A stretch of 64,000 nucleotides of DNA, taken from positions 124,001-188,000 of IMG/VR virus record IMGVR_UViG_3300032268_000986; one strand, 5' to 3'. Below, in pieces: positions 38,363-57,551 of the stretch (position 1 is its first letter; every line of letters starts with the position of its first letter). Made by a program: the position numbers and the translations under genes. Under the pieces are notes generated by a model. The model made no database searches and was not told the origin of the DNA. It saw only the letters and a program-made list of their open reading frames with translations.

Positions 38363-39918
38363 TTTTTACGACCCTGACAGTGAGCTCGCTGACTGAATCC
38401 CCGGGGACTGGCGCAGTTGATTGAACTTTTGTATTTTTGACTCCACTTTTCATCAATGTAGTCTTCGTCCACGGGCTGATTTTCTCTACGTTGATAGCTG
38501 GCAGTCATGCCACCCACAAAGTTTTGTGCATCAACTTCGGTCATGTCAGGCTTGTCCATCAGGGGACCACCTGTGACCCAGGCATCGCAGGTTCTGCGAC
38601 TGGCACATTTGAACTTTAGAAACTTGCAGTATCCCAGGTCGCCGGCGTCAATCACACCTTCTGCATCTGCAGGCGAGTCAGCATCAATACCTTGCGCAAT
38701 GCAGTCCAAGGTGTCTTGGCGTATGTCAAATGCCGCACAGTTGCCGCACAGGCTTTGTTTTGCTTCTTCTGCACTGTCAAGATTCCACTCGTCAACTTTT
38801 TTCATCCAGAACTTGCGGTTGGACATGTCTGGGTTGAGTGGGCCATATCCGTATTCGTCAATGGCTTTTTGTCTGTTCTTGAGATTCAGTGTGATGTCCT
38901 GTGTGGCAGGCGGACACTTCTTTTCAGCCTCCGCCACACCTTGTGATTCAAAATTATCTATATTTCTAGAAACTCTACGCTCACTGCCTTGAGCAGGGAA
39001 TCCTGAACTTTGTGATTGCGGCGCAGGTCTTCCTGGGGCATACTTAGATAACTTTTCAGTGGCTTTTTCTCTAGCAATAGTCATCCACATTTGTTGTTGT
39101 CTGCGATCAATAGGCTGGCCACGTGTGGCAACTATTTGTTCATAGATTGCTCGTGCCATTTCCTCTATGTCTTTATTGTGTTGCACACGAGGATCATCTT
39201 GACGCATGTTTTGGAATTCTCTTGAAACATCAACAGGACGTGATTGTGCTATTGCAGATCCAGCTGCACCTGCCACAGCCGCCGCACCTAGTCCACGTAA
39301 GAATCCTCTACGGCTCAAGTCTTCGTCAAGTTCACCGCCAATGGCTGTGTCCAACAGTTTGACAACCGTGGCAGCTAGTCGGGGATTGGTTTGTGTCTTG
39401 GGATACAAGCTCATTACCAGAGCTGTTTTGCGTTGATCATTTAACCGGGGCCAGGCAGCGCGAATTTCTGTGGCCGATGTCATTCCGGGACCAAATTCCA
39501 CAGTGGGCAAGTAGGCCATGTAGGCATGCCGGGCAAATGGTTCTAGTCGGCGAGCACCCATGAGTGGTTGCAGGTATGCAGGTGATCCGTCTTTTTTTAC
39601 ACCACCGGCCTGGGGTGGTTTGTTGGCGTCTTTTTCACTGCGTACAAAGATCAGTCGATCCTGTGCAGGGTCAAATTGAGCAGTGATTTCCTCGGCACGA
39701 AATGGTGATTTGACCTGCACAAAATGTCCAGGCTCAACTCCAGCCAACTTGGCCAGTTTTTCTTTTACAGCAAATGGAAATGGTCTAGCCGATGTGTCAT
39801 TTGTGGCTGCCACAAATACTTTGGCGTCGGGAAATGCTCTGCGGGCAGAGTTGTAAAGGGCTGCATGGCCAGCATGAAAAGGGTGAAACCCACCCGGTAT
39901 AATAACAACGGTAGTCAT
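38359..39918 (-). CDS. Modular protein: HxGH nucleotidyltransferase-like domain, internal Tat-signal module, Cys-rich module, basic C-terminal peptide
   Basis: GGFHPFHAGH; LDE-DLSRRGFLRGLGAAAVAGAAGSAIA; SQGVAE; CGNC...CKFLKFKC..C; KWSQKYKSSINC. Confidence 0.8.
   Translation of the reverse strand: MTTVVIIPGGFHPFHAGHAALYNSARRAFPDAKVFVAATNDTSARPFPFAVKEKLAKLAGVEPGHFVQVKSPFRAEEITAQFDPAQDRLIFVRSEKDANKPPQAGGVKKDGSPAYLQPLMGARRLEPFARHAYMAYLPTVEFGPGMTSATEIRAAWPRLNDQRKTALVMSLYPKTQTNPRLAATVVKLLDTAIGGELDEDLSRRGFLRGLGAAAVAGAAGSAIAQSRPVDVSREFQNMRQDDPRVQHNKDIEEMARAIYEQIVATRGQPIDRRQQQMWMTIAREKATEKLSKYAPGRPAPQSQSSGFPAQGSERRVSRNIDNFESQGVAEAEKKCPPATQDITLNLKNRQKAIDEYGYGPLNPDMSNRKFWMKKVDEWNLDSAEEAKQSLCGNCAAFDIRQDTLDCIAQGIDADSPADAEGVIDAGDLGYCKFLKFKCASRRTCDAWVTGGPLMDKPDMTEVDAQNFVGGMTASYQRRENQPVDEDYIDEKWSQKYKSSINCASPRGFSQRAHCQGRKK
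38928..38942. repeat. GVAE cassette-boundary repeat (variant copy)
   Basis: CCTCCGCCACACCTT shares 13 nt with the 16-mer at 49493, 55816, 56608 and 57217. Confidence 0.8.
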
Positions 39919-39930
39919 ACCGTTATTTAG

Positions 39931-40296
39931 TTAGTATGTGATGGTGACAGAGTTGATGACACCGCCTGAAAAGCCTTCAACTCGTAAGCGTATCCAGGTA
40001 AAGTTTCCGGCAATGGCAGCAGGGTGATAGTCAGTCAGTGGCACAGTGCTGCCATCCCCGTACACATAGGTGGTAAACCAAGCAGCACTATCAGCGGTGT
40101 CGTCCAGTGTGGCTTCCACATAGATGATTCCTTCAAAGTTCTGCACACTGAATGTCAGGGTTTGAATACTGCCGCGACCATGATAGTAGTCGGCCGCAGT
40201 CACAGCTGGTGATGACCAATCTTGACTGCTGCCATCATAATTGCCAGCAGCTTGACCATATGTGGTGGTATCAAGAATGGTTTGTGTGGTGATCAT
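39931..40296 (-). CDS. Hypothetical beta-rich protein (possible virion component)
   Basis: 121-aa ORF, late-gene context. Confidence 0.7.
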   Translation of the reverse strand: MITTQTILDTTTYGQAAGNYDGSSQDWSSPAVTAADYYHGRGSIQTLTFSVQNFEGIIYVEATLDDTADSAAWFTTYVYGDGSTVPLTDYHPAAIAGNFTWIRLRVEGFSGGVINSVTITY

Positions 40297-40463
40297 TACG
40301 CTTGTTCAATTTCAACAATCACGCCGGCACCGGCCAACTCTTCGGCCACGGCCTGAAGCGCATCGCAGATGTCGCTGTTGGCAATCTGCTGATCTGCACT
40401 GTCTTTTTCCTTGATCAATTTTGAGAGTTTGATCACAACTACTTCTTCGTGTATTTTTGCCAT
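40296..40463 (-). CDS. 55-aa hypothetical protein (not in ORF track)
   Basis: MAKIHEEVVVIKLSKLIKE...VIVEIEQA; TAAATA upstream; TAATG overlap with the next gene. Confidence 0.75.
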   Translation of the reverse strand: MAKIHEEVVVIKLSKLIKEKDSADQQIANSDICDALQAVAEELAGAGVIVEIEQA

Positions 40464-40469
40464 AGTGTG

Positions 40470-41135
40470 TTATTTAGCCTGTATTGGTAGTGTTTTTCTA
40501 ATGATCCCGGGAGACACTAGATTCAACATTTGAATGTCACGCACATCGTCATGATCAATAAAAAAGTGACTCTGCACATAAACATGCCGGGATGCGGCGA
40601 GCCGCTCGCGAAACCCCGGGGTCAAACGATAGCAATCGCCTCGATTCAGCAGAAATCTTCGCAGTGCATGCCCTTGCTCTTGCTCCAGCATGCGACCACG
40701 GAAATAACTGCGATACCGGTGTTGTGGTTTTTCCAGTATCACAACATCTCGGGGCAATGCTACCCGAGCTCGAGTACCGTTTCCGTCTGGCTGTGCAGCC
40801 ACCAGCCGGTCAAGATCTGCTAGACTGTTGGTGTACACGTACATCCAGTCACTGTAGAAAATACGCTTGTGGGGTTCTTCAAATGCCGCCAACACATCAC
40901 ACATGTCGTGCAATCGTGCCACCCAGTTGTCATCAATGACTCTAGCCGGGTTTGACCAGCTGTATTTCAACAGTAGAGTGTTTGTTGCACCAACGGCGGT
41001 ACTCACAGCTTCATGGGTGAGAGTGTGCAAGCACCTGGCTCCACGCATGGCAAAGTTGTAGCCAAATTCGTACTGATCATAGAACAGCCGATCTCGCACA
41101 CGATCTTCAAATGTTGTCAAGTCTAATGATGCCAT
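40470..41135 (-). CDS. Hypothetical protein
   Basis: 221-aa ORF following clpA. Confidence 0.7.
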   Translation of the reverse strand: MASLDLTTFEDRVRDRLFYDQYEFGYNFAMRGARCLHTLTHEAVSTAVGATNTLLLKYSWSNPARVIDDNWVARLHDMCDVLAAFEEPHKRIFYSDWMYVYTNSLADLDRLVAAQPDGNGTRARVALPRDVVILEKPQHRYRSYFRGRMLEQEQGHALRRFLLNRGDCYRLTPGFRERLAASRHVYVQSHFFIDHDDVRDIQMLNLVSPGIIRKTLPIQAK

Positions 41136-43371
41136 CGCTGCCTACTGTTTGTGTGCTGGGGGAAATTACCACAAATTCAACTTGATCATCTACTAGATCA
41201 GCCACAACTTCGCAATCTCTAAGTTGATCAAACAAGATGCGTTTGCTGAGTGGCACACGCAACAACTCGTCAATCTTGCGGCTCAAGGGTCTGGCACCCA
41301 ACTTGCTGTCGTAGCCCTTTTTGGCCAACAAGTCCACGGCAGCTTCGCTCACAGTGAGTCGAATGTTGCGCTGGGCCAGGCTGGTTTTGAGATCGTCTAC
41401 AAATTTTACCACGACCTTTTTAATGGACAAATTGTCCAGCTTTTGGAACTTGACCACTGAGTCAATACGGTTTCGCATTTCGGGCTTGAAAAACTCTTTT
41501 ACTGCTCGATCATCTTCGCCGGTTTTCTCAAAGCTACCAAAGCCAATGTTGTTGGTTTCACTATCTCGGGCGCCCAGGTTTGATGTCATGATGATGATGC
41601 AGTTCTTGCAATTGGCTTTCTTGCCATTTGAACTGGTGATAACACCTTCGTCCAGCATCTGCAACATGATGTTGGTGACGTCGGGGTGAGCCTTTTCAAT
41701 CTCGTCAAACAGCACAATGGCAAAGGGATTTTTGCTGAGATCTGAAATCAGTTTGCCACCGCCTATGTTGCCATCTTCAAAACCCACGTAGCCTGGCGGC
41801 GCACCAATCAAGCCGCTGACCGAGTGACGTTCTTGAAATTCACTCATGTCGTATTTCAGCAAGGGCATGTCAAGATTTGCACTCAACAATCGAGCCAGTT
41901 CAGTCTTGCCTGTGCCAGTGGGTCCTGTGAACAAGAAACTGGCCATGGGACGCTTGTCATTGCCAATGCCAGCGAAGGAAATATACACACGTTCCAGCAC
42001 TGTGTCCACAGCTGAATCTTGCCCGTATAACTTTTGTTTGATATTGCTTTCAAGTTCCACAATTTTGGCTGATCGTTCGTTCTGCAGACGGTCTGTGGGC
42101 ACACCGGTCACACGACTCAGTTGAGCTTCAATCAAGGCACGAGTAATGGTCACACAGCCTTGATCCCGCACACGTTCACGAGCACAGGCACCGTCAATCA
42201 AGTCAATTGATTTGTCGGGATTCTTTTTGTCATGAATGTAACGATTTGCCAGTTCCACAGCAGTGGTCATGGCCTCGGTGTCAATCAACACATTGTGGAA
42301 TGTTTCCAGGCGTGGTGAGAGACCAATCAGGATCTGTTCTGTGGTCACTGCATCGGGTTCATCAATGCTGAGCTTGTGAAAGCGGCGCATCAAGGCACGA
42401 TCTTTTTCAAAGCTCTCGTAAAACTCTTCCCAGGTGGTTGATGCCACTACCTTGAGCATGCCCTTGGTGATGGCCGGTTTCAGCATGTTGGCAAAGTCCA
42501 AGCTGGAGTTTGATCCAGAACCGGCGCCACGCATGGTGTGAGCCTCGTCGATGAACAAAATGGTCTTTTTCTTGGTCTCCAAGGCTGCAATCACCTGTTT
42601 GAATTTTTCTTCAAACTCACCGCGGTACTTTGACCCAGCCAGCAAACTACCAATTTCCAGGCTCCACACTTCGTGATCTTTGAGAAACTCGGGCACACGT
42701 CCTGCATGAATTTCCTGGGCCAGTCCATCCACAATGGCAGTTTTGCCCACGCCGGGATCGCCCACCATGAGCACATTGGCTTTGAAGCGTCGAGCCAACA
42801 CCGTGATCATGTCTGACAGTTCGGTGCTGCGACCAATCATGGGTTCCAGTTGATTTTTTGCAGCACGAGCAGACAAATTCATGCAGTATTCTTCCAGCAC
42901 AGCATCGGCCTGTTGCTCAGACATCACTGCCGAAGATTCTTGACTGTAGTTTTTGCTCCAGAACTCAACAAATTCTGCTTTCTTCACTCCATACTTGAGC
43001 AAGAAATAGTGTGCATGACTGTTGGTTTCGGCCATGATAGACAGATACAAGTCAATCGTGGTCAATTGACGTCGTCCAGTAAACATCACTTGTACATTGG
43101 CGCGATTAAAAATGCGTTCCAGTGACTGTGTTTTTTTAGGTTGTGTGTCTGGAGTGTTGCTGATCATGCCCACTAGACTGCCAAGATATGCTGTTATGTC
43201 AGCATCCAGGTTGACCACGTCGGCACCAAAGCGTTCCAGAGTCTTACGGAATGGGTCAAATCGAATCATGCTCAACAACAGGTGTTCAGTCAGCACATAC
43301 TCGTGTTTTTGGTCACGAGCAATTTTCACGGCCTGTTCAACAACAAATTCAATATCGGGGCTATTTTGCAT
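41107..43371 (-). CDS. clpA: ClpA-type Hsp100 AAA+ chaperone
   Basis: Clp N-domain (EHLLL), Walker A GDPGVGKT and GPTGTGKT, FIDEAH, FDEIEKAH, no ClpB middle domain, IGF loop. Confidence 0.92.
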   Translation of the reverse strand: MQNSPDIEFVVEQAVKIARDQKHEYVLTEHLLLSMIRFDPFRKTLERFGADVVNLDADITAYLGSLVGMISNTPDTQPKKTQSLERIFNRANVQVMFTGRRQLTTIDLYLSIMAETNSHAHYFLLKYGVKKAEFVEFWSKNYSQESSAVMSEQQADAVLEEYCMNLSARAAKNQLEPMIGRSTELSDMITVLARRFKANVLMVGDPGVGKTAIVDGLAQEIHAGRVPEFLKDHEVWSLEIGSLLAGSKYRGEFEEKFKQVIAALETKKKTILFIDEAHTMRGAGSGSNSSLDFANMLKPAITKGMLKVVASTTWEEFYESFEKDRALMRRFHKLSIDEPDAVTTEQILIGLSPRLETFHNVLIDTEAMTTAVELANRYIHDKKNPDKSIDLIDGACARERVRDQGCVTITRALIEAQLSRVTGVPTDRLQNERSAKIVELESNIKQKLYGQDSAVDTVLERVYISFAGIGNDKRPMASFLFTGPTGTGKTELARLLSANLDMPLLKYDMSEFQERHSVSGLIGAPPGYVGFEDGNIGGGKLISDLSKNPFAIVLFDEIEKAHPDVTNIMLQMLDEGVITSSNGKKANCKNCIIIMTSNLGARDSETNNIGFGSFEKTGEDDRAVKEFFKPEMRNRIDSVVKFQKLDNLSIKKVVVKFVDDLKTSLAQRNIRLTVSEAAVDLLAKKGYDSKLGARPLSRKIDELLRVPLSKRILFDQLRDCEVVADLVDDQVEFVVISPSTQTVGSDGIIRLDNI

Positions 43372-43427
43372 ATGGTTCCTTGAAATACTTTCAATAATTT
43401 TAACACACTGGCCTGGCTGATGCAACC

Positions 43428-44228
43428 TTATTGGCAGTGTTCCTTGATGGCCTGTGTCACAGCGTCGGGCACATGATCGGGTATGTATGCTGTCAGGCGC
43501 AGCATGAGATCGCCACGACCTGTGCCAGAATCTTGCAGTCCACGCTGTCGCAGCCGCATCACAGTTCCAGGTTGGCTGGCAGCAGGTATGTTGATGGTCA
43601 GTTCATTGCCCAAAAAATCACTCAGGTCAACATCGCCGCCTGTGATCAATTTCCAGATTGAAATCCTAAAATCAGTGTGCAAGTTCAAACCATCTCGGCG
43701 CCACGCAGGATCGGGCTGCACTCGATACTGCACCACAAGGTCTTGTCCCCCGGGCGCTACACCACTGTATTGTACATTGTCCCCGTCCTGGATACCACGG
43801 GGCACTGAAATTTCCACAGTGGTGGTACCGGCACTGCTGCCAATGGACACACGTCGAGTGGATCCCAGTGCAACATCACGCAACTGTATAGTGACCGACA
43901 TGCGAACATGACTGCGTCGAGGCTGTGCGCCACCGGGAAATCCTCCAGTGAATCCACCCTGACGAAACATGCTGAACAAGTCATTGATGTCCACTCCAGC
44001 CGGGTGAAACCCACCACCCCCGCCGCCCTGGAATGGCGAGGGATTGTCATAGGCTGCTCGTTTGTTGGGATCACTCAGGGTGTCATAGGCTACCTGAATT
44101 TCTTGAAATCGAGCTGTGTCGCCACCTTTGTCGGGATGATGCTGGCTGGCCAGTCGACGGAAAGCACGTTTGATTTCATCGGCAGCAGCGGTTCGAGCAA
44201 CTCCTAGAGTTGCATAGTGATCGGTCAT
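43428..44228 (-). CDS. DnaJ/CbpA-type co-chaperone (no Zn finger)
   Basis: J-domain with HPD (HHPDKGG), G/F-rich linker, C-terminal GDL domain. Confidence 0.92.
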   Translation of the reverse strand: MTDHYATLGVARTAAADEIKRAFRRLASQHHPDKGGDTARFQEIQVAYDTLSDPNKRAAYDNPSPFQGGGGGGFHPAGVDINDLFSMFRQGGFTGGFPGGAQPRRSHVRMSVTIQLRDVALGSTRRVSIGSSAGTTTVEISVPRGIQDGDNVQYSGVAPGGQDLVVQYRVQPDPAWRRDGLNLHTDFRISIWKLITGGDVDLSDFLGNELTINIPAASQPGTVMRLRQRGLQDSGTGRGDLMLRLTAYIPDHVPDAVTQAIKEHCQ

Positions 44229-44234
44229 AGAAAA

Positions 44235-44280
44235 GGTCCAGTACAACATTAATTATACTGGACCTGCGGATGATAATCAA
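44235..44280 (-). promoter_or_regulatory. Sigma70 promoter whose -10 box lies within a terminator-like inverted repeat
   Basis: TTGATT (44280-44275)-17-TATAAT (44257-44252); GGTCCAGTA/TACTGGACC stem followed by TTTT. Confidence 0.65.
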
Positions 44281-44499: not shown

Positions 44500-44501
44500 G
44501 T

Positions 44502-44845: not shown

Positions 44846-44869
44846 TTTATTTTCCTTTATAGTTTTTGT

Positions 44870-45439
44870 TTACCGTTCTGGAAACGGTGGAATTATCGGG
44901 GCTGGTTTTCCGCCCCATCCGGCAACGACTTCTGTGAGCATAGGCGCTGGTGCTCCAAGGCCTGCACTACTACCATAGCCTGTTGTAGGTGCGCTTCCAA
45001 AGCCGCTTCCGCCGCCCAGGGGTTGTGTTCCCCAGGACTGTGTGACTGTGGTTGCTGTTGGTGTACCGAACATACTGGTTGTGGACTGTCCCACTGGCGG
45101 CGGTGGCGTGTATGTTGTTCCGACATTTGATGGTAGGGTGATTCCGCCATTGTTGGCTCCTGACATTTTTTCCTGTGTGCGACCATAGGCTGCGATACCC
45201 AGCACAGCACCCATGGCAATGTGGAACAAGCCGGCACCCTGCAAGGTAATGGGTTGCCACTGTATGTTGACCTGGCCTTTGCTCACAGCCTGCAACAGAC
45301 TCCACAGTATGGGAAACAACACAAAGTCCATGACACAAACCAGCATGTACATCCAACCCATCATGGGTCGCCATTTTGAGTTCATCCAGTCTTCTTTTTT
45401 CTTTTCTGACTCACTCATGGGTTTTTGTTCTTCTGTCAT
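44870..45439 (-). CDS. Holin-like membrane protein (3TM holin-like) with low-complexity tail
   Basis: WRPMMGWMY..FVLFP..AMGAVLGIAAYGRTQEK; lysis-gene neighbourhood. Confidence 0.55.
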   Translation of the reverse strand: MTEEQKPMSESEKKKEDWMNSKWRPMMGWMYMLVCVMDFVLFPILWSLLQAVSKGQVNIQWQPITLQGAGLFHIAMGAVLGIAAYGRTQEKMSGANNGGITLPSNVGTTYTPPPPVGQSTTSMFGTPTATTVTQSWGTQPLGGGSGFGSAPTTGYGSSAGLGAPAPMLTEVVAGWGGKPAPIIPPFPER

Positions 45440-45465
45440 GCCAGCTCCTTGTGTAACAAAAGTAT

Positions 45466-48597: not shown

Positions 48598-49713
48598 TCA
48601 GCAGTTCCACTTGCGCAGTGCCAGAGCCTTGCGAGTGGGTTTACCATTGGGCTTTTTCATGGGGCCTTTGACGCCGCCCATTCTGGCACAAAATGATTTT
48701 CTGCGCTTGGCTGCTTTGGAACCTGGCTTGAGTTTTGAAGGCTTGGTGGTCACTGCCATTTGCAGTTTGCTACCGGGATTCTCTCTGCGATAGCTGGCCA
48801 CACCCTTGGCATTGAGTCCGCCCTTTTTGCTCTTGCCTTCTTTTCTGCGCCAGGCAGCAGTTTCATACAGCACGTTGTCTGGCAGGGCTTCAAACTGTTC
48901 CCATACTAGATCTTTACTCACACGATTTTTCACTGCCATTTCTTCGGCCAGTTGATCCATGGCTTCAAACATCTCATCCACTTCAGGATCCACTTCGTCC
49001 GACGCTTCTTCAGAGTACATGTAGTCCCACACTGCGACCAGCATGCTCTTGGCCACAGCAATCTTTTCCTGGCACCATTCAGGCAAGTTGTCGCCTGAGT
49101 CAATCAAGTCGTCGATACCTCGAACAGCACGATCCAGGGTTTCTAGATTGTTGTCGGCCATGCCGGCTTCGTCGTCATACTCGGGATTGTAGTTTTCTGG
49201 CATGGTTTGTTCACCAAAACGTTGACGATAGCTGTTGGGGTTCATTGACGATCTGGTCCCGACCACAGCATTGCCTTCGCCACTTAATAACAAATCATAC
49301 ATGAGTTTGATTACTTTTAAGGGGCTATTCATTCTTTCCAGGGCGTTTTTAAACCATTCAACTTTTTCTGGTTTCATTGGCTTGGAACTGGGCTTGCTGA
49401 TCAGCGCCAGGGCCTGAGCCTTTAGCGTGGACAAGTCTCTGATTTGTTCAAGACGTTTTAAATCCTCAATATCAAAGTTGTAATCGGCTTTGCCTTCCGC
49501 CACACCTTCTGACTTGTTGCCATAGTTGCCAGCGCCTTTTTTGCGGCACTGAACCAGGCGTCCTGATGCATAGGCTGACGGCCATACTTTTGCACTAGAC
49601 TTGACCTTGTAGTAACAGGCGTCTTTCTTTTCCATCATCAGCATTTCGCTGAACATGGGGCCACCACAGTGTGGGCATGACTGTTTGGATTCAACCAAGT
49701 CTTTGAATTTCAT
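48598..49713 (-). CDS. Modular putative internal head polyprotein (basic Cys-containing modules)
   Basis: MKFKDLVE start; DACYYKVK..WPSAYASG; SEGVAEG; DNLPEWCQEKI; C-terminal KKGGLNAKG..RRKSFCARM. Confidence 0.78.
   Translation of the reverse strand: MKFKDLVESKQSCPHCGGPMFSEMLMMEKKDACYYKVKSSAKVWPSAYASGRLVQCRKKGAGNYGNKSEGVAEGKADYNFDIEDLKRLEQIRDLSTLKAQALALISKPSSKPMKPEKVEWFKNALERMNSPLKVIKLMYDLLLSGEGNAVVGTRSSMNPNSYRQRFGEQTMPENYNPEYDDEAGMADNNLETLDRAVRGIDDLIDSGDNLPEWCQEKIAVAKSMLVAVWDYMYSEEASDEVDPEVDEMFEAMDQLAEEMAVKNRVSKDLVWEQFEALPDNVLYETAAWRRKEGKSKKGGLNAKGVASYRRENPGSKLQMAVTTKPSKLKPGSKAAKRRKSFCARMGGVKGPMKKPNGKPTRKALALRKWNC
49493..49508. repeat. GVAEG cassette-boundary 16-mer
   Basis: CCTTCCGCCACACCTT exact copy. 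Confidence 0.9.
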
Positions 49714-50273
49714 TTGCGTTTTCCTTTGGTACTTACATTTATGGCTGCGCCTGATCGATTGGCATTGGGATCTTCTCGGCGCTTTCTTGCGGCTGCACTG
49801 GCACGACCCTTTTTGCCCAGGGCATGTGCCTTGGCCTGTGGCAAACACTTGGGCTTGCCTTCTTTGCTACTGCCTCTGGCACAGTCTCCACGTATTTTGC
49901 CGTCGGGTCCAAAACGAACCCATTTTTGTTTGAACCAGTCACGTAGATTTTCTTCCAGCTCTTGTGTGGACATTTTCTTTTCATATCCCTGCACAGAGGT
50001 GGTCTTGTCGGGGTCAGGCGCACCTTGCAATTTGGCAGCTGGCAAAAACTTCCGTATACTCTGCAGGGTCAGCGGACCCATCACGCCATCCACATCCAGG
50101 TTGGCACGGTACTGTTGATTCAGCATCTGTTGTATTCTGCGAACTTGATCTGACGTCATGTCTTGTTCTTCACTCACAGGCACACAATTGGGTACCATTC
50201 GGGAACCTTTTTTCTTCATGCCTTGACGACGATATCCGGTCCAGCAGGCTTCCAATATTTCTCTATATCTCAT
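49710..50273 (-). CDS. Modular putative internal head protein with a peptidoglycan-binding-like module
   Basis: MRYREILE; ACWTGY..VPNCVP; IQQMLN..LDVDGVMGPLT (PG-binding pattern); LEE-NLRDWFKQKW..KPKCLP. Confidence 0.75.
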   Translation of the reverse strand: MRYREILEACWTGYRRQGMKKKGSRMVPNCVPVSEEQDMTSDQVRRIQQMLNQQYRANLDVDGVMGPLTLQSIRKFLPAAKLQGAPDPDKTTSVQGYEKKMSTQELEENLRDWFKQKWVRFGPDGKIRGDCARGSSKEGKPKCLPQAKAHALGKKGRASAAARKRREDPNANRSGAAINVSTKGKRK

Positions 50274-50302
50274 GGCTGCTGCCCTGTTGCCCGGTATTTC
50301 AT

Positions 50303-50911: not shown

Positions 50912-50938
50912 ACTGCTATTTAGTTGTCTATTATAGAA

Positions 50939-51736
50939 TTATTTCAGGCCCAGGCTTTTTCGTATGTTTGTGGCACTGATATTGTGAATACGATCATCAA
51001 ATGTTTCCTGTTCTATTTTGTACCCAACATCCCTGCCGTAGGTGATGTTGACAATGTTGGGCACCACTTGGATTTCGTACTGTCCCTGATACACCATGTC
51101 TAGATCTCTGCGTATATAATTCTTTACTTGATCAATGGCAAATGGGTTTGATCCCTGCCAACCCTGACAGTCCCTGATTTGTATCACAACTTGTCCGGTT
51201 TTGGCAATGGCACGTTCAAACAGGGCACGATGTCCCTCATGCCAGGGCTGCCAACGTCCCAGCATTTGCACAGTTTCCTTCTGCCAGTCAAACACGGGTC
51301 TGCGGCGGTTGTCCAGTACATGTGCGGCAATGAATTCTCCCCATTTTTCTGCATGTTGTTCAGTGATACGGAAATCATATACTTCGGGTGCAACAAACGC
51401 TCGATTTGTGTCCTCGTAGCGGCCACGGTCAATGGTGTCAACCCATACAGTCCAGTCGGCCTTGAAGTTGTTGCGCATTTCCACCAAGGGTGCAACAAAA
51501 TCACAGATGACATAATCCGCATCTGTCATTGCATCTGCTAGACTACGCATACGCAGACTTTGACGAATACGACCTGCTTCGCTGAAGTCCCAGTCATTGT
51601 GCTCTTTGCGCACATCGTCGGCATTGAGCCAACGCACACGTTTCTTTTCGGCCTGCAAGTGCTCAAGAATGTGCTGTGCTAGATATGTTTTGCCTGCACC
51701 GGGCAGGCCCATGATTAGTATTCGTTGTGGGGTCAT
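50939..51736 (-). CDS. APS kinase-like domain fused to a small HxGH nucleotidyltransferase domain
   Basis: GLPGAGKT, LNADDVR, DFS..GR..Q, DFVAP; GRWQPWHEGH. Confidence 0.8.
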   Translation of the reverse strand: MTPQRILIMGLPGAGKTYLAQHILEHLQAEKKRVRWLNADDVRKEHNDWDFSEAGRIRQSLRMRSLADAMTDADYVICDFVAPLVEMRNNFKADWTVWVDTIDRGRYEDTNRAFVAPEVYDFRITEQHAEKWGEFIAAHVLDNRRRPVFDWQKETVQMLGRWQPWHEGHRALFERAIAKTGQVVIQIRDCQGWQGSNPFAIDQVKNYIRRDLDMVYQGQYEIQVVPNIVNITYGRDVGYKIEQETFDDRIHNISATNIRKSLGLK

Positions 51737-51752
51737 TTACGTTTCCTTTGGG

Positions 51753-51977
51753 TTAATCTTTATCTGTGACTATGACAGCAGTTTGGTCAACCCAAACTAT
51801 TCTGCCCTCACAGGCAATGTTCCATTTGGTTACACCGTGCTCGTGTGTGCATTCAGTGTAGGTTTCTCCAATGATGCGAACATCTGTGGCCAAGTGTTCC
51901 ACACCATTTTCAAATATGCGCCACACCAAGTCACTGCCGTGGTGTTGTGTATTGAATCTAACGTGATACTTGTTCAT
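51753..51977 (-). CDS. Small hypothetical protein
   Basis: 74-aa ORF in the operon. Confidence 0.65.
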   Translation of the reverse strand: MNKYHVRFNTQHHGSDLVWRIFENGVEHLATDVRIIGETYTECTHEHGVTKWNIACEGRIVWVDQTAVIVTDKD

Positions 51978-52624
51978 CTGGGCAAGTGAGCCAAAAAATC
52001 ATTTGTTTTTTCAGTTCTGACTCCGGTAAGCTGTAGTGTGACTCGGGCATGGTGTCCTGCGTTGGCTGTTGAATGTGGAATGTTGGCCCAGTCAAACGTG
52101 GTCACAGATCCGGCCCGCCACTGATTCCAGTGATGGTTGCCGTATTCCCAGAACTGTCCCGGTTGCCAGGCCGTGAGCTGAACAAATATTCGCATCACAC
52201 GGGCAGGATCTTCGGGTAGCCATTTCTGCAGTTTGTCAATGTGCAGGTTCCACACTTCGCCGAGCCGTTGCACGTGAATGCGAGCCATGCAGTCTGCCAG
52301 TCCAAATTGATCCACAATCTGTTTCAATGAATCGGGAATTTGCCAATTCATGTGAGTAATGATCATTTGGGGATCAGCGCCCACCCGAGAGATATCATAT
52401 TCTTCGGCTGCCAGGTCCTCGGACGGAACATGCACACCCTTGCCTTTGTAGCCACGTGTGGCCCAGGTAGCAGGTTGTGAATTGGCAATTATCAAGTCCA
52501 AATCTGCCAGCCACGTGGGTTCAATGTGTCCCAGTTGAATCAGTACATCTTCGGCACGGTCCTCACGAGTGGGGTCAAAATGATAGTTTGATTTTTGTTT
52601 TGTGGTGTCCCAACTGCTGTTCAT
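51974..52624 (-). CDS. Cupin/2OG oxygenase-like protein
   Basis: NLHIDK (HxD), HSTAN.G..ARVTLQLTG. Confidence 0.55.
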   Translation of the reverse strand: MNSSWDTTKQKSNYHFDPTREDRAEDVLIQLGHIEPTWLADLDLIIANSQPATWATRGYKGKGVHVPSEDLAAEEYDISRVGADPQMIITHMNWQIPDSLKQIVDQFGLADCMARIHVQRLGEVWNLHIDKLQKWLPEDPARVMRIFVQLTAWQPGQFWEYGNHHWNQWRAGSVTTFDWANIPHSTANAGHHARVTLQLTGVRTEKTNDFLAHLPR

Positions 52625-53250
52625 ATCACTGTTACCTTGATGTCGTTGTTTGTGTAGTTTTGTCTATAATTGCTGTCGGGCCAGGCAATGTTCAATGCAT
52701 CACATAATTCCAAATTGGTAGATACTGGTTTTGATCCGCGATGTTTGTAATCCCACATGGCATCAGTGATGCCTGTGTTCTGTTGTTTAATTATGCCGGA
52801 CATGGTCTTTAAATCTTTATAGTATGTATCATACAATGGATAGGTGATGTCAAAATGTCCACACTTGACCCACCAGCCCAGACAAGCATCATCTGAGCGA
52901 TGTACCAACACAATAGGCGACTCAGGCCAGAGACTCTTTAGTGTGCCAATCTGTGTGGAAAAACAGTGACTTTTGATAATGCGAATACCCGAACCACAAA
53001 ATGGTCTATCAAATTCAGCCTCCAGCATTTCTTTTTTATATTGTGCTAGATTGTCAAATCCTGTGCCAAACTCCATGCCTGGATCCCAGTAAGCACCCAG
53101 ATGCATCAGGTCCATTCGGCCCGCAGCGTCATGGTAGTAGGTACGTGCATCAGAGTAGTCGGTTTGATCAATGCTGGGCGAATAATAAATGTTTTTTACC
53201 ACACTGCTCCATTTTGAGCCTGGGGCACCGGCCACAAAGATGTATTTCAT
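52621..53250 (-). CDS. Hypothetical protein, sulfotransferase-like
   Basis: IFVAGAPGSKWS, IIKSH, IVLVHR pattern of P-loop sulfotransferase folds. Confidence 0.45.
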   Translation of the reverse strand: MKYIFVAGAPGSKWSSVVKNIYYSPSIDQTDYSDARTYYHDAAGRMDLMHLGAYWDPGMEFGTGFDNLAQYKKEMLEAEFDRPFCGSGIRIIKSHCFSTQIGTLKSLWPESPIVLVHRSDDACLGWWVKCGHFDITYPLYDTYYKDLKTMSGIIKQQNTGITDAMWDYKHRGSKPVSTNLELCDALNIAWPDSNYRQNYTNNDIKVTVI

Positions 53251-54209
53251 TGGTTGGGATCAATTCTACGTGCAATGGGTTGCCAGGTCTGTTGCAGGCG
53301 AGCCATGCTGGCTCTAACACCAGCTGGACTGTGTTCTTCGGGTGTGATATACATCATGTTTTCACGAAATTTAGCACCGGCTTCTGCTGACCGTATTGCC
53401 GGCACAAACTGGTCACGATACCATGCTTGTATTTCAGCAGGTGTACCTGGTGGCAACACCATGTTCCAGCAGCCGTGTATGCTGAGTCCAGGGGCGGCTC
53501 GGCTCATTAAAGGAATGTGCTCAAGTCCTGGTAGAGTGCGTGTGTCAGCAATGCCGATAAACTTGAGAAGCCCGGCCTGCGCATGTGGATAGCCCACGGC
53601 CACTGGAGTCACACCAAATTCCACATGTCCGCCCATGACATCTGTCAAGGCCTGTGCCGGTCCTTTGTACATCACAGTTTGCAAGTTGTCGCTGCCAGGC
53701 GCACTGACTCGGTCCACAAGATATTCCACTGCCAGCTTGTGTCCGCCGCCACCAATGGCCACCATTAGTCGCTGTCGATTACGAATGGCAGCCACAAACT
53801 CTTCTGGAGTGTTGATTCGACTGCTGGGGTGTGCCCAGAATGCCAAGGGGCTGCGGGCAATGTTGGCAATGGGTTCTAGATCCATGGGATTATATTTTAT
53901 CATTTTTGGATACCATATCTCAGGTGTGACCCAGTTTGATTGGCAAGCAGGCACAGCAATGGTGTGCCCATCTCGAGGCTGTGTGACAAAGTGATTGATG
54001 GCAATGTTGCCATCAGCACCGGGACGATGTTCTGGCTTGAACACTGCACCAGTTTTCTTCTCCACAATGTCGGCCACGATGCGGAACGAGATTTCGTTGC
54101 CGGCGCCGGGTCCATTGGGGAATATCACAGTCACAGGTTTTGAGGGCTGCCATGCAAATGCTATGGCAGGCGCCAACAACAGCGCAGCAAATAATTTTTT
54201 GATCAACAT
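53247..54209 (-). CDS. TctC/Bug-family tripartite tricarboxylate transporter substrate-binding protein
   Basis: Signal peptide (AIAFA-W), PGAG.E, RPGADGNIA, DGHT, YKGPAQALTDVMGGHV, PPGTP. Confidence 0.9.
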   Translation of the reverse strand: MLIKKLFAALLLAPAIAFAWQPSKPVTVIFPNGPGAGNEISFRIVADIVEKKTGAVFKPEHRPGADGNIAINHFVTQPRDGHTIAVPACQSNWVTPEIWYPKMIKYNPMDLEPIANIARSPLAFWAHPSSRINTPEEFVAAIRNRQRLMVAIGGGGHKLAVEYLVDRVSAPGSDNLQTVMYKGPAQALTDVMGGHVEFGVTPVAVGYPHAQAGLLKFIGIADTRTLPGLEHIPLMSRAAPGLSIHGCWNMVLPPGTPAEIQAWYRDQFVPAIRSAEAGAKFRENMMYITPEEHSPAGVRASMARLQQTWQPIARRIDPNQ

Positions 54210-54218
54210 GTTTTTCCT

Positions 54219-54291
54219 TAAATAATAGTGTTGATTTCAACAAGAGCCACAAATTTTTTGTGGTACTGTTTAAAATTCTACTCTATTTATA
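54219..54291. promoter_or_regulatory. Face-to-face late-promoter motifs
   Basis: TAAATA on + (54219-54224) and TATAAATA on - (54291-54284), with a CCACAAA/TTTGTGG inverted repeat between them. Confidence 0.5.
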
Positions 54292-54300
54292 AAATTTTCT

Positions 54301-55020
54301 ATGAACACCAAAATTTTTAACCTTTTGCAAAAAAATTTGCACACAGCATTTGCTCTGCCCAAGTATGCCAACATTGTGATTGATGCCAACACTCGGGTGC
54401 AAGACCTGCCCTGGACTCCGGCTCGATACCGCAAGTTCAAGGATGCAGTGGATGCTGAATTGAGCCTGCCCTGTGACTACATGGGCACCTTGCGTGAGAT
54501 CACGCATGACCTAAGTGAGCGATATATTCATCGCTTCTTTGCTGAAATATGGAAACCTCGAACCAATGACTATGATTACACTGGCTGGCAACTGGCTGAA
54601 GAAATTAACCAACTCAATCCGCGATCGGTACTGGACGTGGGTTGTGGATACCATCCGTTCAAAGGGAGAATTAATAATCTCACTGGGATCGATCCTTACA
54701 ACAACTGTGCTGATTATATGGTTGACATCTTGGAATACGTGGGATCACATGACGTTGTCATCGCGTTGGGTTCAATAAACTTCAATGATCGCGAAGAAAT
54801 TGAAGCACGATTTGCTCGCTGCGTGAGTGTGCTGGATGTGGGCGGCCGGTTCTATCTACGTGCCAATCCTGGTATCACACATCGCACAGGACCTTATGTG
54901 GAAATATTCCCCTGGACGTTTGAAGTGGTCAAAGAATTTGAATCACGATACAACCTGCGCTTGGACACCTTCAAAAAGGATGCCAACGACCGACTGTACT
55001 TTGTTTATACTCGACTGTGA
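54301..55020 (+). CDS. Class I SAM-dependent methyltransferase
   Basis: VLDVGCG, TGIDPY, VLDVGGRF. Confidence 0.8.
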   Translation: MNTKIFNLLQKNLHTAFALPKYANIVIDANTRVQDLPWTPARYRKFKDAVDAELSLPCDYMGTLREITHDLSERYIHRFFAEIWKPRTNDYDYTGWQLAEEINQLNPRSVLDVGCGYHPFKGRINNLTGIDPYNNCADYMVDILEYVGSHDVVIALGSINFNDREEIEARFARCVSVLDVGGRFYLRANPGITHRTGPYVEIFPWTFEVVKEFESRYNLRLDTFKKDANDRLYFVYTRL

Positions 55021-55653
55021 TCAGCGCCCGGCCACTGCCAAGGCAGCACCGTTGTTGAAACTCTGACTGTGCGACTGCGCCTGACGCAGACCCTTGCGCT
55101 TTGACCACTCATATCCAGCACGATGGCCCGAGCAGTCCTTGGTACAGGGCGAGCCTAGGAACGACAGCTCTTGCAAGTGTTCGGCTGACTCGCCCAGTTC
55201 AATTTCCGGGGTCACGCTCTGAAACGTGCGATCCATCACAGCAGTCTTGAACTGAAACTCTGAGGTTTGTTCGTTGTTGCGGCGTAGGCCAATGCTGAGT
55301 CCAGTATCGGGATCACGCACCCAGACCTTGCTGGCAGCTGGCATGCGCATGAGCTGATCCTGGATGCTGGGCAGTCGGCGCAGAGCTTGATCCACAATGC
55401 CAGGATCTATTTCACGAAAATACACCTGTTCAATGGCATGGCTGTCTACGTCAATGGTCAAGTCGCCAATGTGTAAGTGTCCTTGTGATGTTTCTGCTAT
55501 GTGTGATTTTGATTCACCGCCTCCATCACCGCCACCTTCGCCAGAATCTTCACTGCCGTAGTAGGCATACCCTGGGAAAAAATATCCACCATAACGACTG
55601 GATTTTTTCCCACGACGTTTTTTGCGCTCGGTGACAAACTCTTGGGCTCTCAT
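55021..55653 (-). CDS. Modular putative internal head protein
   Basis: MRAQEFVTE start; basic/Gly-rich segment; IAE and LQE sites; C-terminal PCTKDCSGHRAGY. Confidence 0.75.
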   Translation of the reverse strand: MRAQEFVTERKKRRGKKSSRYGGYFFPGYAYYGSEDSGEGGGDGGGESKSHIAETSQGHLHIGDLTIDVDSHAIEQVYFREIDPGIVDQALRRLPSIQDQLMRMPAASKVWVRDPDTGLSIGLRRNNEQTSEFQFKTAVMDRTFQSVTPEIELGESAEHLQELSFLGSPCTKDCSGHRAGYEWSKRKGLRQAQSHSQSFNNGAALAVAGR

Positions 55654-57551
55654 TTTTTTGGTGGTTGCACTGCTGTGGGCACGTTACGGTACACACGTTT
55701 TTGTGGGTCGTACACTGTTTTAAGTGGGCCCATGCCTGCCAGTTTCTTTACTCTGGCCACCATGTCTTGATAGTCGTCACCGTAGTCGGCTTCGGGTGGC
55801 TCAGACTTCCGGTTGCCTTCCGCCACACCTTGTGATACGCTTTCAAACTCTGGCTTTTTATTTGAAGAAAGTCTATCTAATTTTTCAATAGTGCTACCTG
55901 CATTTCTAAAAAACTGTGCTGATTCTTTTTGGTATAATTCTGGATTATTTTTTAATACTTCTACACTTTGCTTTGCCTTAGGGTAGATGCTATTAACATA
56001 ATCTTTAGCATTGTTTGCATCAATAAACCTCTTAATAGATGCGGCAACTGCTTTAAATAAATCACTATTATCTAACTGTCTATCTTTACAAATTGCGTAT
56101 ACTATTAAAGCATCTATTAGGACATCAAATTCTTCTTTACCAAGATTGCCCATTGCAGATTTTTGTTGTTGTTGAGATTGGAGTGCAGAATTATATTTTT
56201 GATACGCTTCGCTTATACCTGCTCTATACGCATTTAAAAAATCCTGATAACGATTTTTCATATTAGTTAGAAACGCTGACACTAACTTATTCTCTTTATC
56301 TAACCCGGATGCCTCATATGCTTGTTGATTGCAAGTATCAATCACATTTTTTGCATTATATGAATTTGTTTGTCTACAATAGTCAGAGACCCAATTACCA
56401 ACATTAGTGACTAACCAATTTCTTAAATCATATCCTGTGTCCTGGTGAATACGACCCATTGTTCTTGTGGCCAAATCTGTAGCATATTTTGTCCATTGCG
56501 TAACTTCCTGAGCGTCTGCTTTTGTTGCAACACCACCGGCTGCACCTGTCACAGCCGCCGCACCCAAGCCCTTTAGGAATCCTCTACGGTCTATTTCTTC
56601 TAATGAGCCTTCCGCCACACCTTCTTGCATATTGTTTAACAATTCCTGCGCTTTTTCAATGCTGATCATGTATCTACCAAAGCGGTTAGGGTCTGCAGCC
56701 TTTTGTAGATATTCTTTGCTAAAGCCCTGTGGTCCGCTTGGTGAATCTATTCTAGCAGGAGCTGTGACTTGTTGCTTGCCATTTGCTCTGGCCTGTAGTT
56801 CTGCCTTGGCATCAGCAACACTGACCATTGGGCGAGGGTGTTCACCTGAAGCAACTTGTTGTAGATATTGTGTATTATAATTACTCAAGTCTGCCGCCTG
56901 AGCATGACCCATACCACCACCCATTGCCATGGCACCTGCTAATGCAGCTGAGCCCAATGCGCTTTTCCACCCTTCAGTTAAATCAGTTACACCAAAACCA
57001 ATATAGCTGTCACCGTGTTCGTCGCCTGATCGAACAACAAATGCGCCGCCCTCTTCACTTTCAATTTCACCAATTTCCCAACCTTGGCGAGCTAGAGCTT
57101 GTTCAACTTGTTGTTGTACAGCATCATCACCATTGTACCACATACGAGCGTACTTGTGTAGTGTATCTTCTTCACCACTGTCACCGCCATCACCTGGCGC
57201 AAATTCATTCAACGAGCCTTCCGCCACACCTTGGCTTTCACTGACTTCGGCAGCGGTCAGGTACACAGTCCAGGTCTTGCCCGAACTGGCGGATTTCCGT
57301 TCAGCCCACTGCTTCATGTTTTCAAGATTGCTGCGCTCTTCTGCACTGTCTGCTGTGCCACGGCCGGCAACCACTTTCCATGGTCTGCCATTGATGGCAA
57401 TTTGTATATTGTTGCGCTCGTGTGCCAGTTCTTGACGTAGGCCACGATGGTCATCGCCACGGCCCATGCCGCTCACACTGCTGTCGTAGTCACGCTGATA
57501 AGCATCACGACGGTCAAAGCGACTTTCTTGTGTTATTTGACTGACTTTCAT
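55650..57551 (-). CDS. 633-aa modular polyprotein with three GVAEG boundaries and internal Sec- and Tat-type signal peptides
   Basis: MKVSQITQE; QGVAEGSLNE; LTE-GWKSALGSAALAGAMAMGGGMGHAQA; EGVAEGSLEE-IDRRGFLKGLGAAAVTGAAGGVATKADA; QGVAEG. Confidence 0.8.
   Translation of the reverse strand: MKVSQITQESRFDRRDAYQRDYDSSVSGMGRGDDHRGLRQELAHERNNIQIAINGRPWKVVAGRGTADSAEERSNLENMKQWAERKSASSGKTWTVYLTAAEVSESQGVAEGSLNEFAPGDGGDSGEEDTLHKYARMWYNGDDAVQQQVEQALARQGWEIGEIESEEGGAFVVRSGDEHGDSYIGFGVTDLTEGWKSALGSAALAGAMAMGGGMGHAQAADLSNYNTQYLQQVASGEHPRPMVSVADAKAELQARANGKQQVTAPARIDSPSGPQGFSKEYLQKAADPNRFGRYMISIEKAQELLNNMQEGVAEGSLEEIDRRGFLKGLGAAAVTGAAGGVATKADAQEVTQWTKYATDLATRTMGRIHQDTGYDLRNWLVTNVGNWVSDYCRQTNSYNAKNVIDTCNQQAYEASGLDKENKLVSAFLTNMKNRYQDFLNAYRAGISEAYQKYNSALQSQQQQKSAMGNLGKEEFDVLIDALIVYAICKDRQLDNSDLFKAVAASIKRFIDANNAKDYVNSIYPKAKQSVEVLKNNPELYQKESAQFFRNAGSTIEKLDRLSSNKKPEFESVSQGVAEGNRKSEPPEADYGDDYQDMVARVKKLAGMGPLKTVYDPQKRVYRNVPTAVQPPKK
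55816..57232. repeat. Three exact copies of the GVAEG 16-mer
   Basis: CCTTCCGCCACACCTT at 55816, 56608 and 57217. Confidence 0.92.

Follow-up and report, generated by a model that had tools for sequence, protein, structure and literature searches.

A standard in-frame connector in mosaic polyprotein genes of freshwater giant phages

The window analysed here, a stretch of 64,000 nucleotides from the 342,865-bp genome of a phage recorded in IMG/VR (IMGVR_UViG_3300032268_000986, positions 124,001 to 188,000 of that record), contains three long genes on the minus strand that are built from unrelated protein modules. First, the gene at 55650-57551 encodes 633 amino acids and comprises four modules separated by three copies of a short connector. 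Copy 1 (57216-57233; CAAGGTGTGGCGGAAGGC, encoding QGVAEG) lies between modules 1 and 2; copy 2 (56607-56624; GAAGGTGTGGCGGAAGGC, encoding EGVAEG) directly precedes an internal twin-arginine (Tat) signal; and copy 3 (55815-55832, encoding QGVAEG) lies between an all-helical cargo of unknown function (55832-56507) and the C-terminal module (55653-55814; ..DYGDDYQDMVARVKKLAGMGPLKTVYDPQKRVY..), which is the last module of many relatives' polyproteins. Second, the gene at 48598-49713 (371 aa) consists of an N-terminal Cys-rich VWPSAYASGRLVQCRKKG module, connector copy 4 (49492-49509, encoding EGVAEG), and a body ending in DUF6321. Third, the gene at 38359-39918 (519 aa) consists of a cytidylyltransferase-like domain, an internal Tat signal (about 39259-39321) with its module, a variant connector (38926-38943; CAAGGTGTGGCGGAGGCT, encoding QGVAEA), and a C-terminal Cys-rich module. 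In this last gene, the homolog P0022 has QGVAEG where the window has GGELDEDLS.

To evaluate whether the repeat is real, we searched the window and then the whole genome for the 16-mer CCTTCCGCCACACCTT. Exact copies were found at 49493-49508, 55816-55831, 56608-56623 and 57217-57232, together with a copy with two mismatches at 38927-38942, whereas none of 100 shuffles gave six or more matches at up to three mismatches. These five are the only copies in the genome at up to two mismatches, and no inverted copy was found. All of them lie on the minus coding strand, in one frame, reading SQGVAEG, QEGVAEG, SQGVAEG, SEGVAEG and SQGVAEA, with codons GGT GTG GCG GAA GGC (GAG GCT in the variant). No GVAE motif with these codons occurs in any other ORF of the genome. 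Nucleotide identity does not extend beyond a unit of 17-18 nt, and the real unit is of 18 nt, (C/G)AAGGTGTGGCGGAAGGC, encoding (Q/E)GVAEG. The repeat described in the original prediction is therefore confirmed, with the correction that the variant, placed there at 38928 and said to share 13 nt, starts at 38927 and shares 14 of 16.

The original prediction also spoke of AT-rich cassettes, in the plural, which is wrong. The cargo at 55832-56507 has a GC content of 0.328, against 0.471 ± 0.031 for genome windows of that size (lowest 0.12%), but the Tat-signal part (0.54) and all other modules (0.47-0.53) are ordinary, so that only one cassette is AT-rich. The internal Tat signal itself (56511-56609; GSLEEIDRRGFLKGLGAAAVTGAAGGVATKADA) starts at the residue after GVAE and has the RRxFLK motif, a weakly hydrophobic h-region and an AxA site, although its Pfam TAT_signal score of 20.4 bits, like the other score obtained, 17.9 bits, is below the cut-off of 22.7. 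In the precursor it starts at residue 316 of 633, and it would be N-terminal only after cleavage at the connector.

The connector is not a quirk of this genome. The exact 17-mer occurs in more than 119 IMG/VR contigs, always in frame and between unrelated modules of long ORFs, and 149 of 169 motif loci share other genes with this genome, at a median amino acid identity of 54% and with a locus GC of 36-49%. All 323 exact 12-mers lie in long ORFs in the GVAE frame, although some ORFs stop 0-7 residues after GVAE, where a cleavage site has no obvious use. Large related contigs have 1-4 copies, always on one strand, and single ORFs have up to nine connectors. A sequence logo showed a sharp six-residue motif with unconstrained flanks. 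In agreement with constraint on the protein, single-mismatch variants are synonymous in 75 cases (10 possible changes) and non-synonymous in 46 (26 possible changes).

We then asked whether codon usage could account for the identical silent sites. First, GCG makes up 7.5% of Ala codons and GTG 22% of Val codons in these ORFs, but 90-91% in the motif, and the expected share of exact 12-mers is 0.006, against a leave-one-out observed share of 0.67. Second, since most of these statistics come from loci chosen by the DNA motif, we examined loci found by protein similarity only, of which 12 of 21 GVAE motifs are the exact 12-mer, where codon usage predicts 0.007 per motif; a degenerate DNA scan gave 27 of 88. 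Third, a control invariant motif, WPSAYASG, has free silent sites. Fourth, where the neighbouring four-fold sites of homologous modules are saturated (0.26 identity), those of the motif remain 0.79 identical. Chance or codon bias, for which nothing speaks beyond GGT and GAA being preferred codons, is thus refuted.

Comparison between contigs showed that the modules are exchanged. Module orders differ between contigs, the window's modules occur in other contexts, and blastn HSP ends pile up at the motif, although this is partly expected at a universally identical 18-mer wherever the true crossover lay nearby. The AT-rich cargo recurs at 98-99% identity in other contigs that have different neighbours. 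Contig L255 shares 784 nt at 98.7% identity, ending at 55815, the last base of the motif in copy 3, while the next shared module is only 82% identical and lies two extra modules away. L256, whose backbone is 67-77% identical, carries the cargo at 98.4% identity, fused to the homolog of the other window polyprotein gene. A close relative has another cargo in its place; in an X2 contig with 97-98% identical flanks, 493 other nt stand in place of 760. However, not every junction is at the repeat, as the upstream edge of the Tat cargo lies in the Tat n-region and L256 has a breakpoint inside the cargo.

A possible role of the motif as a protease site was evaluated from the position of the Tat signals and from the gene neighbourhood. 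The Tat RR starts 3-7 residues after GVAE in 5 of 8 loci, and about 40 of 56 metagenomic proteins read GVAEGSLEE[IV]DRRGFL, the signals starting a fixed 7 residues after GVAE in most relatives. The same modules also occur as ORF starts. A candidate processing protease is a predicted zincin-like domain (35618-35959, minus strand) within a 1373-aa polyvalent-type ORF (32651-36772). Its HExxH motif plus downstream Glu is invariant in 27 homologs and the core of its model has pLDDT above 90, but no Pfam family passes its threshold, and the nearest folds, namely, minigluzincins, IrrE/PprI, SPRTN/Wss1 and ArdC, are weak matches (best E 7e-3). Homologs of this domain lie 2-5 kb from a GVAEG gene in 5 of 5 large contigs, and inside GVAEG ORFs in L040, L143, L073 and P0008. 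This linkage could, however, be plain synteny within a related clade, and modelling of the complex gave no answer.

Based on these results, the interpretation that we favour, with moderate confidence, is that the repeat is the core of an in-frame connector that joins autonomous protein modules into mosaic polyprotein genes in a clade of freshwater jumbo phages distantly related to the T4 superfamily. What the analysis establishes is that the connector sits at module boundaries, that its peptide is sharply defined, that its silent sites are conserved far beyond codon bias and beyond the divergence of the adjoining homologous modules, that the same modules occur in different orders, genes and genomes, and that many similarity breakpoints fall at the connector. 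What we infer, at the protein level and from sequence alone, is that the motif is an endopeptidase site that releases the modules as separate small proteins, the most likely enzyme being the zincin-like domain of the neighbouring polyvalent protein. Cleavage would expose the Tat signal that begins right after the motif, and some modules would then go to the host periplasm. At the DNA level, we infer that the identical 17-18 nt give co-infecting relatives a short homology patch for in-frame crossover by the phage's own UvsX, gp32, UvsW and gp46/47-type recombination system. In this view, the modules flanked by the standard connector are the ones that spread, which keeps the nucleotide standard, and the AT-rich cargo is a recent import of this kind from a lower-GC relative. 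Short-homology recombination is the best-supported reading of an otherwise unexplained silent-site conservation, yet 17 nt is short for homologous recombination, that crossovers happen inside the 17-mer remains an inference, and selection for transferability is a second-order argument and, on present evidence, a hypothesis.

The interpretation given in the original prediction, namely, a protease linker that doubles as a short-homology recombination site swapping cargo among internal-protein genes, is therefore partly supported. The in-frame linker, the differing module content with junctions at or next to the repeat, and the failure of codon bias to explain the identical codons all hold, and a protease-site role is plausible; the assignment to internal-protein genes is not supported.

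Among the alternatives, the one that survives best, although doubtful, is that the silent sites reflect a translational or mRNA-level function, such as a programmed ribosome pause at the module boundary that allows co-translational folding or cleavage. GTG and GCG are rare codons in these genes, SD-like AAGGUG and GGAAGG are present, the element never occurs outside its reading frame, and the canonical sequence is the same in genomes of 36-49% GC. However, GGT and GAA are common codons, so the motif is not simply a run of rare ones; no conserved RNA structure and no Rfam match were found; the phage's own tRNAs cover all five codons; the anti-SD match is weak on inspection; and this reading does not explain why similarity breakpoints fall on the motif.

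Somewhat less likely is that these are capsid-internal, ejected proteins whose motif is a T4-type prohead-protease site (hydrophobic-x-Glu, compare the T4 capsid-targeting sequence ending in IAE) and also a recombination site, as proposed for T-even internal-protein loci. V-A-E followed by a small residue fits the T4 gp21 rule, the genome has T4-like gp17, gp18, gp55, gp47 and UvsW, and homologous modules in marine cyanomyophages lie between gp16 and gp17. However, no gp21 (PF03420, phrog_207), S78 or other T4-type or HK97-type prohead protease and no gp23 (PF07068, phrog_138) was detected in the genome, nor did tblastn with a cyanophage gp21 give a hit, although this absence is weak because the phage-family searches gave no signal in any control genome either. 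Moreover, the genes lie in a replication and chaperone region (PolB, ClpA/B-like, DnaJ), 120 kb or more from the terminase and sheath genes, and next to PolB in about 70 relatives. Internal Tat signals point to the cytoplasm-to-periplasm route rather than to the capsid, and, together with a cytidylyltransferase, fit cytoplasmic expression better.

Also unlikely is a dedicated sequence-specific nuclease or recombinase that recognises the 17-18-mer and inserts or excises modules, as in an integron-like system working in frame. The near-invariance of an asymmetric site across a clade, the direct repeats flanking the cassettes, and the ORFs that end just after a terminal connector, resembling an empty attachment site, would agree with it. 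However, the site has no dyad symmetry and no structured attC-like element, no recombinase or nuclease was found consistently next to the arrays, with no tyrosine recombinase among the neighbours scanned with Pfam, many junctions lie off the site, and the general T4-type recombination genes are sufficient in principle (PMC2839356). Least likely of all, short of chance, is an uncleaved flexible linker whose nucleotide identity is only recent common descent, hitch-hiking with recently spread modules. Some adjacent segments, such as the Tat signal, are nearly identical in DNA among loci, and variants are mostly single transitions away from the canonical form, but the flanks are unrelated or saturated at silent sites while the motif stays fixed, a passive linker does not need a six-residue invariant peptide, and Tat signals inside uncleaved proteins of 500-1000 aa would not be expected to work.

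The connector shares features with several known systems. The polyvalent proteins of phages and conjugative elements (Iyer et al., 2017; PMC5512222) are likewise long mosaic proteins of several unrelated domains, for which an associated zincin-like metallopeptidase is proposed to cut them into functional units, and the 1373-aa ORF (NTase-like, HExxH domain and amidoligase) fits this description, its peptidase domain being predicted from a model with weak fold matches. Neither a conserved junction peptide nor a nucleotide-level connector is described there, where the word linker does not occur, and the modules reported here are mostly small unknown domains, several with Tat signals. Polyvalent proteins are also delivered into the host with the DNA, packaged in the virion. 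The PeSL promoter/stem-loop cassettes of T4-type phages (Arbiol et al., 2010; PMC2839356; PMC4122927) are short conserved elements that flank accessory ORFs and act as linker sequences for exchange, insertion and deletion between related phages through the phage's own recombination system, and were compared to integrons by their authors. Flanked units are exchanged in the present case too, but PeSLs are intergenic regulatory elements of about 50-70 bp, with a sigma-70-like early promoter and a terminator stem-loop, whereas the 17-18 nt element is always inside a reading frame, must keep frame, encodes a peptide motif and shows no structure signal. In T-even tail-fibre adhesins (gp38 glycine-rich motifs, gp37 His boxes; Tetart 1996/1998, cited in PMC3157838), conserved in-frame motifs also delimit variable segments, with junctions at or near them, but there they form the structural core of a single folded domain; here one universal sequence, likely a cleavage site, separates unrelated autonomous modules. 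T4 internal proteins (see the review PMC3012670) offer a further comparison. They are hypervariable accessory proteins, packaged in heads, with a single N-terminal sequence ending in hydrophobic-Ala-Glu that is removed by gp21; here the motif is internal and repeated, no head association is evident from sequence alone, and no gp21 homolog was detected, in searches that gave no signal in control genomes either. Polyproteins of RNA viruses with 3C-like or NIa-type sites have a sharply defined short motif at every junction with variable flanks, but this is a DNA phage, its gene content is accessory and shuffled between genomes, and the silent sites are fixed. No description of GVAEG or DUF6321 was found in the literature searched.

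It is tempting to speculate, although this stronger reading is only a tentative possibility, that a clade of freshwater jumbo phages uses one universal, nucleotide-exact, in-frame plug to string accessory proteins into polyproteins, and that this plug is read twice: as peptide, by a dedicated zincin protease that releases the modules, some of which then carry a freshly exposed Tat signal into the host periplasm; and as DNA, as the standard joint through which modules are traded between phages, possibly helped by a sequence-specific factor. This would be a coding-sequence counterpart of integron or PeSL cassettes, kept fixed at silent sites by selection for exchangeability. If the dual reading holds, it would be a clear natural case of a standardised in-frame connector, one short sequence under selection both as a peptide and as DNA. 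It would explain how giant phages assemble and trade arrays of small accessory proteins without breaking reading frames, would add post-cleavage Tat export to the ways in which phages place proteins in the host periplasm, and would give a searchable 17-mer that marks hundreds of unknown accessory modules in freshwater viromes.

To establish whether the observation behind the original prediction holds, we first searched for the 16-mer CCTTCCGCCACACCTT, which is exact at 49493, 55816, 56608 and 57217, with a 2-mismatch copy at 38927, a count that no shuffle approached. These five copies are the only ones in the genome, an IMG/VR virus record of 342,865 bp that is 99% complete and of which the window is bases 124001-188000, and all genes concerned are on the minus strand. 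On the coding strand the unit is (C/G)AAGGTGTGGCGGAAGGC, read as (Q/E)-G-V-A-E-G, and identity stops at its edges. Three copies lie in one 633-aa ORF (55650-57551), one in a 371-aa ORF (48598-49713), and the variant, QGVAEA, in a 519-aa ORF (38359-39918). The stretch 55832-56507 has a GC content of 0.328, compared with a genome value of 0.471 +/- 0.031 for windows of that size, which places it in the lowest 0.12%, whereas the other modules are ordinary. The observation therefore stands, except that there is one AT-rich cassette rather than the several that had been proposed.

The genomic setting of these genes is not that of a head-gene cluster. The window holds a family-B DNA polymerase, an AdoHcy hydrolase, a B12-radical SAM, a ClpA/B-like ATPase, DnaJ, a GTA-type holin, a TctC-type binding protein and a 1373-aa ORF with an amidoligase domain. 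The polymerase is closest to those of Sinorhizobium phage Phosso and Agrobacterium phage Atu_ph07 (46-50% aa), and then to Rak2-like phages. In about 70 related contigs (among loci L006-L248) the GVAEG polyprotein gene lies next to the PolB gene and to a small 86-92-aa ORF (window 16752-19769, with the small ORF at 19491-19751), while in this genome the polyprotein genes lie 19-38 kb away. A GTA-type 3-TM holin homolog and a peptidoglycan-binding-domain protein (44870-45439 and 49710-50273, minus strand) lie among the polyprotein genes, so lysis-related functions sit in the same region. The TctC/Bug-family periplasmic solute-binding protein (53247-54209, minus strand) belongs to a family that is expanded in Betaproteobacteria. 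Elsewhere, the genome has T4-like terminase, sheath, gp55, gp47, UvsW, UvsX and gp32-like genes, together with a cluster of 33 tRNA genes and a permuted (two-piece type) tmRNA with tag ANDSQFALAA (G000:C1:91040-109238, in coordinates of the whole genome and outside the window). This tmRNA type is typical of alpha- and betaproteobacteria and cyanobacteria, and is thus a possible host clue. The ClpA/B-like double-AAA ATPase and a full DnaJ (window 41107-43371 and 43428-44249), plus two ClpP paralogs (G000:C1:227530-228123 and 229760-230332), together make a near-complete proteostasis set. The ClpPs are processive degraders, however, and so are poor candidates for site-specific cuts. No prohead protease or major capsid protein of T4 or HK97 type, and no gp23, was detected, although the phage-family searches gave no hit in any control genome either, so that this absence is weak evidence.

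The sequencing runs that hold this DNA are freshwater and lake metagenomes. Megablast and tblastn searches with the 633-aa ORF, and blastn with the connector plus the Tat signal, found nothing in 50,697 phage records, and thus no near-identical cultured phage. When bacterial genomes were searched, the 18-mer gave 56 mostly single hits in high-GC actinobacteria, at about the chance level, plus a few small MAG contigs that look like binned phage, one of them with 3 copies. Small Comamonadaceae and betaproteobacterial MAG contigs also carry the 18-mer, but this search gave no host assignment.

The motif is clade-wide. The exact 17-mer is present in more than 119 IMG/VR contigs, and many contigs carry 2-3 copies 150-500 bp apart. 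In 196 distinct ORFs we counted 449 GVAE motifs, up to nine per ORF, with internal modules of a median length of 78 aa. Of 169 loci that carry a motif ORF, 149 share other genes with this genome at a median 54% aa identity, and their GC ranges from 36 to 49%. Five large related contigs (260-342 kb) carry 1-4 exact 12-mers each, always on one strand. All 323 distinct exact 12-mers lie in long open frames in the GVAE frame, so the element never occurs as non-coding DNA, and no antisense copies were found. The peptide logo is (K/E)-Q-G-V-A-E-G-(S), with uninformative flanks.

We then asked whether codon bias could account for the identical codons, and this explanation is rejected on several grounds. 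First, in these ORFs GTG is 22% of Val codons and GCG is 7.5% of Ala codons, but in the motif they are 91% and 90%, such that the exact 12-mer is expected at 0.006 per motif and is seen at 0.67 after removing one ascertaining copy per ORF. Second, a degenerate DNA scan for S-Q-G-V-A-E-G with any codons returned 88 distinct sites, of which 27 were the canonical sequence. Third, contigs reached only through protein similarity to the Tat cargo gave 12 exact 12-mers among 21 GVAE motifs, against 0.007 expected per motif. Fourth, an invariant amino-acid motif in the same genes, WPSAYASG, has freely varying four-fold sites. Fifth, for homologous module pairs whose neighbouring four-fold sites are saturated (26% identity), the adjoining motif keeps 79% identity at its four-fold sites; a stricter within-family control, using the VWPSAYASG module followed by the motif, gave only 4 rows and was uninformative. 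Single-base variants are 75 synonymous (10 possible changes) against 46 non-synonymous (26 possible), so peptide and nucleotides are both constrained. These variants are scattered single changes, mostly transitions, and genome-specific variants, which would suggest co-evolution with a reader, were not seen. There was no Rfam match, and predicted pairing shows only what a GC-rich patch gives, with no RNA structure signal.

Comparison of the loci showed that module shuffling is real. Module orders differ between contigs, and among 1,383 blastn alignments between the ORFs internal alignment ends pile up at the motif, with 221 of 1,141 starts within +/-10 nt and 206 of 1,043 ends within -3 to +11 nt, although part of this pile-up is expected for any universally identical 18-mer. 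The window's own modules recur in other combinations. The AT-rich cargo occurs in at least 24 metagenomic proteins of 372-1106 aa at 30-99% identity, each with different partners, and nearly all of the aligned copies end ..KKPEFESVxQGVAE. The structural model of this cargo is predicted to be all-helical (pLDDT 73) and has no significant PDB fold match.

At the DNA level, locus L255 shares 784 nt at 98.7% with the window, in a stretch that ends at 55815, the last base of the motif, while the next shared module is only 82% identical and is separated by two extra modules. L256, a 240-kb relative whose backbone is 67-77% identical, carries the cargo at 98.4% identity, but fused to the homolog of the other window polyprotein gene, and one of its breakpoints lies inside the cargo. 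Here (L256:6001-7248 against window 55028-55146 and 55997-56603) the Tat cargo is cut at window position 55997 and joined to the C-terminal part of the homolog of the next gene (window 55021-55653), a deletion or fusion that does not use the connector. In metagenomic run X2, a 3,368-nt contig that is 97-98% identical on both sides has 493 other bases in place of 55794-56553, and it keeps the Tat signal. In runs X4 and X6 the cargo is 6-10 times deeper than its flanks, and contigs end at the motif edges. Motif-to-motif joints were also seen (55832 to 56604 and 55832 to 57213), but these have only 20-nt sides and could not be interpreted as clean deletions. Thus, cassettes move between diverged genomes, often but not always at the connector, and the low GC of the cargo matches the lower-GC members of the clade. 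The Tat-signal coding sequence (window 56511-56609 and 39259-39321; loci L057, L108, L131, L152 and L163) is itself nearly identical in DNA across loci (CGT AGA GGA TTC ..., GGTGCGGCGGCTGTGGCAGGT), and looks like a second standard part, with the upstream junctions of the cargo falling in its n-region.

The possibility that the polyproteins are processed at the motif is inferred from sequence alone. In the 633-aa ORF a twin-arginine signal (GSLEEIDRRGFLKGLGAAAV..ADA) begins at the residue after GVAE. In 5 of 8 Tat signals in the IMG/VR loci the RR lies 3-7 residues after GVAE, and among 56 metagenomic proteins with this signal about 40 read GVAEGSLEE[IV]DRRGFL. A Tat signal buried 100-800 residues inside a protein makes sense only if cleavage exposes it. 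The same modules also occur as ORF starts, for example M..SLNEFA.. against GVAEG-SLNEFA.., and P0022, a homolog of the 519-aa ORF, has ..GGEQGVAEGSLSEIDRRGFL where the window has ..GGELDEDLSRRGFL. However, some ORFs stop 0-7 residues after GVAE, which this reading does not explain.

A candidate for the putative processing protease came from one protein (P0008) and two loci (L040 and L143), which end in an HExxH module. Its homolog in this genome lies at window about 35618-35959, inside the 1373-aa ORF (32651-36772, minus strand). This ORF reads as a polyvalent protein, namely, an N-terminal minimal nucleotidyltransferase-like motif (GS..DIDLH), with phrog_36119 matching the N-terminus, then an HExxH zincin-like domain, and then Amidoligase_2. 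In 27 homologs H-E-x-x-H and a Glu about 21 residues downstream are invariant. The core of the structural model has pLDDT above 90, and its nearest solved folds are minigluzincins (abylysin, selecase), IrrE/PprI, SPRTN/Wss1 and ArdC, albeit with weak E-values from 7e-3, and no Pfam family passes its threshold. In 5 of 5 large related contigs a homolog lies 2-5 kb from a GVAEG gene, thirty of 168 short loci also contain one, and homologs neighbour GVAEG genes in 31 loci, yet this linkage may be plain synteny. Cultured phages with the domain are freshwater Synechococcus phages B3, B23 and S-SRM01, and Flavobacterium phage immuto, where it sits in a polyvalent NTase-NMNAT-HExxH protein and is followed by ..KKVMAEG...

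The nearest known concepts are four. First, polyvalent proteins with MPTase processing (PMC5512222). Second, PeSL cassettes, which are intergenic linker sequences for homologous shuffling in T4-type phages (PMC2839356). Third, exchanges within or near conserved in-frame motifs of gp38 and gp37 adhesins (PMC3157838). Fourth, the T4 internal proteins, whose capsid-targeting sequence ends ..IAE and is cut by gp21. None of these combines one universal junction peptide, fixation of its silent sites across a deeply diverged clade, and Tat signals placed to be exposed by cleavage, and literature searches for GVAEG and DUF6321 found no description. Modules such as the Cys-rich VWPSAYASGRLVQCRKKG domain and DUF6321 also occur in Pelagibacter phages and in marine cyanomyophages. 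In the latter, modular proteins carrying them lie between gp16 and gp17 (L249:2359-4482, from Synechococcus phage ACG-2014f, and L250:2494-3324, from S-SKS1), and in the two cyanophage proteins that we translated the modules are joined by other sequences (for example ..SNWRD..EHEFIDLIKPEP..) and not by the QGVAEG connector. Likewise, a 700-aa ORF in the tail and terminase region of this genome (L252:13187-15289, that is, G000:C1:308187-310289) shares a short module (phrog_10538, phrog_30268) with DUF6321-type proteins but has no GVAE connector.

Based on these results, the interpretation advanced in the original prediction, of a protease linker that doubles as a recombination site among internal-protein genes, is partly supported. 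What our analyses document is a non-random repeat and the exchange of modules at it, whereas cleavage, exposure of the Tat signal and the identity of the protease remain well-motivated inferences. Among the alternatives for the fixation of the silent sites, a translational role and a sequence-specific enzyme are the live rivals, and codon bias is rejected. The label of internal head proteins is not supported. The repeat has a clear role as a junction of mosaic polyproteins, and our preferred reading is that its silent sites are fixed by short-homology recombination with selection for exchangeability.
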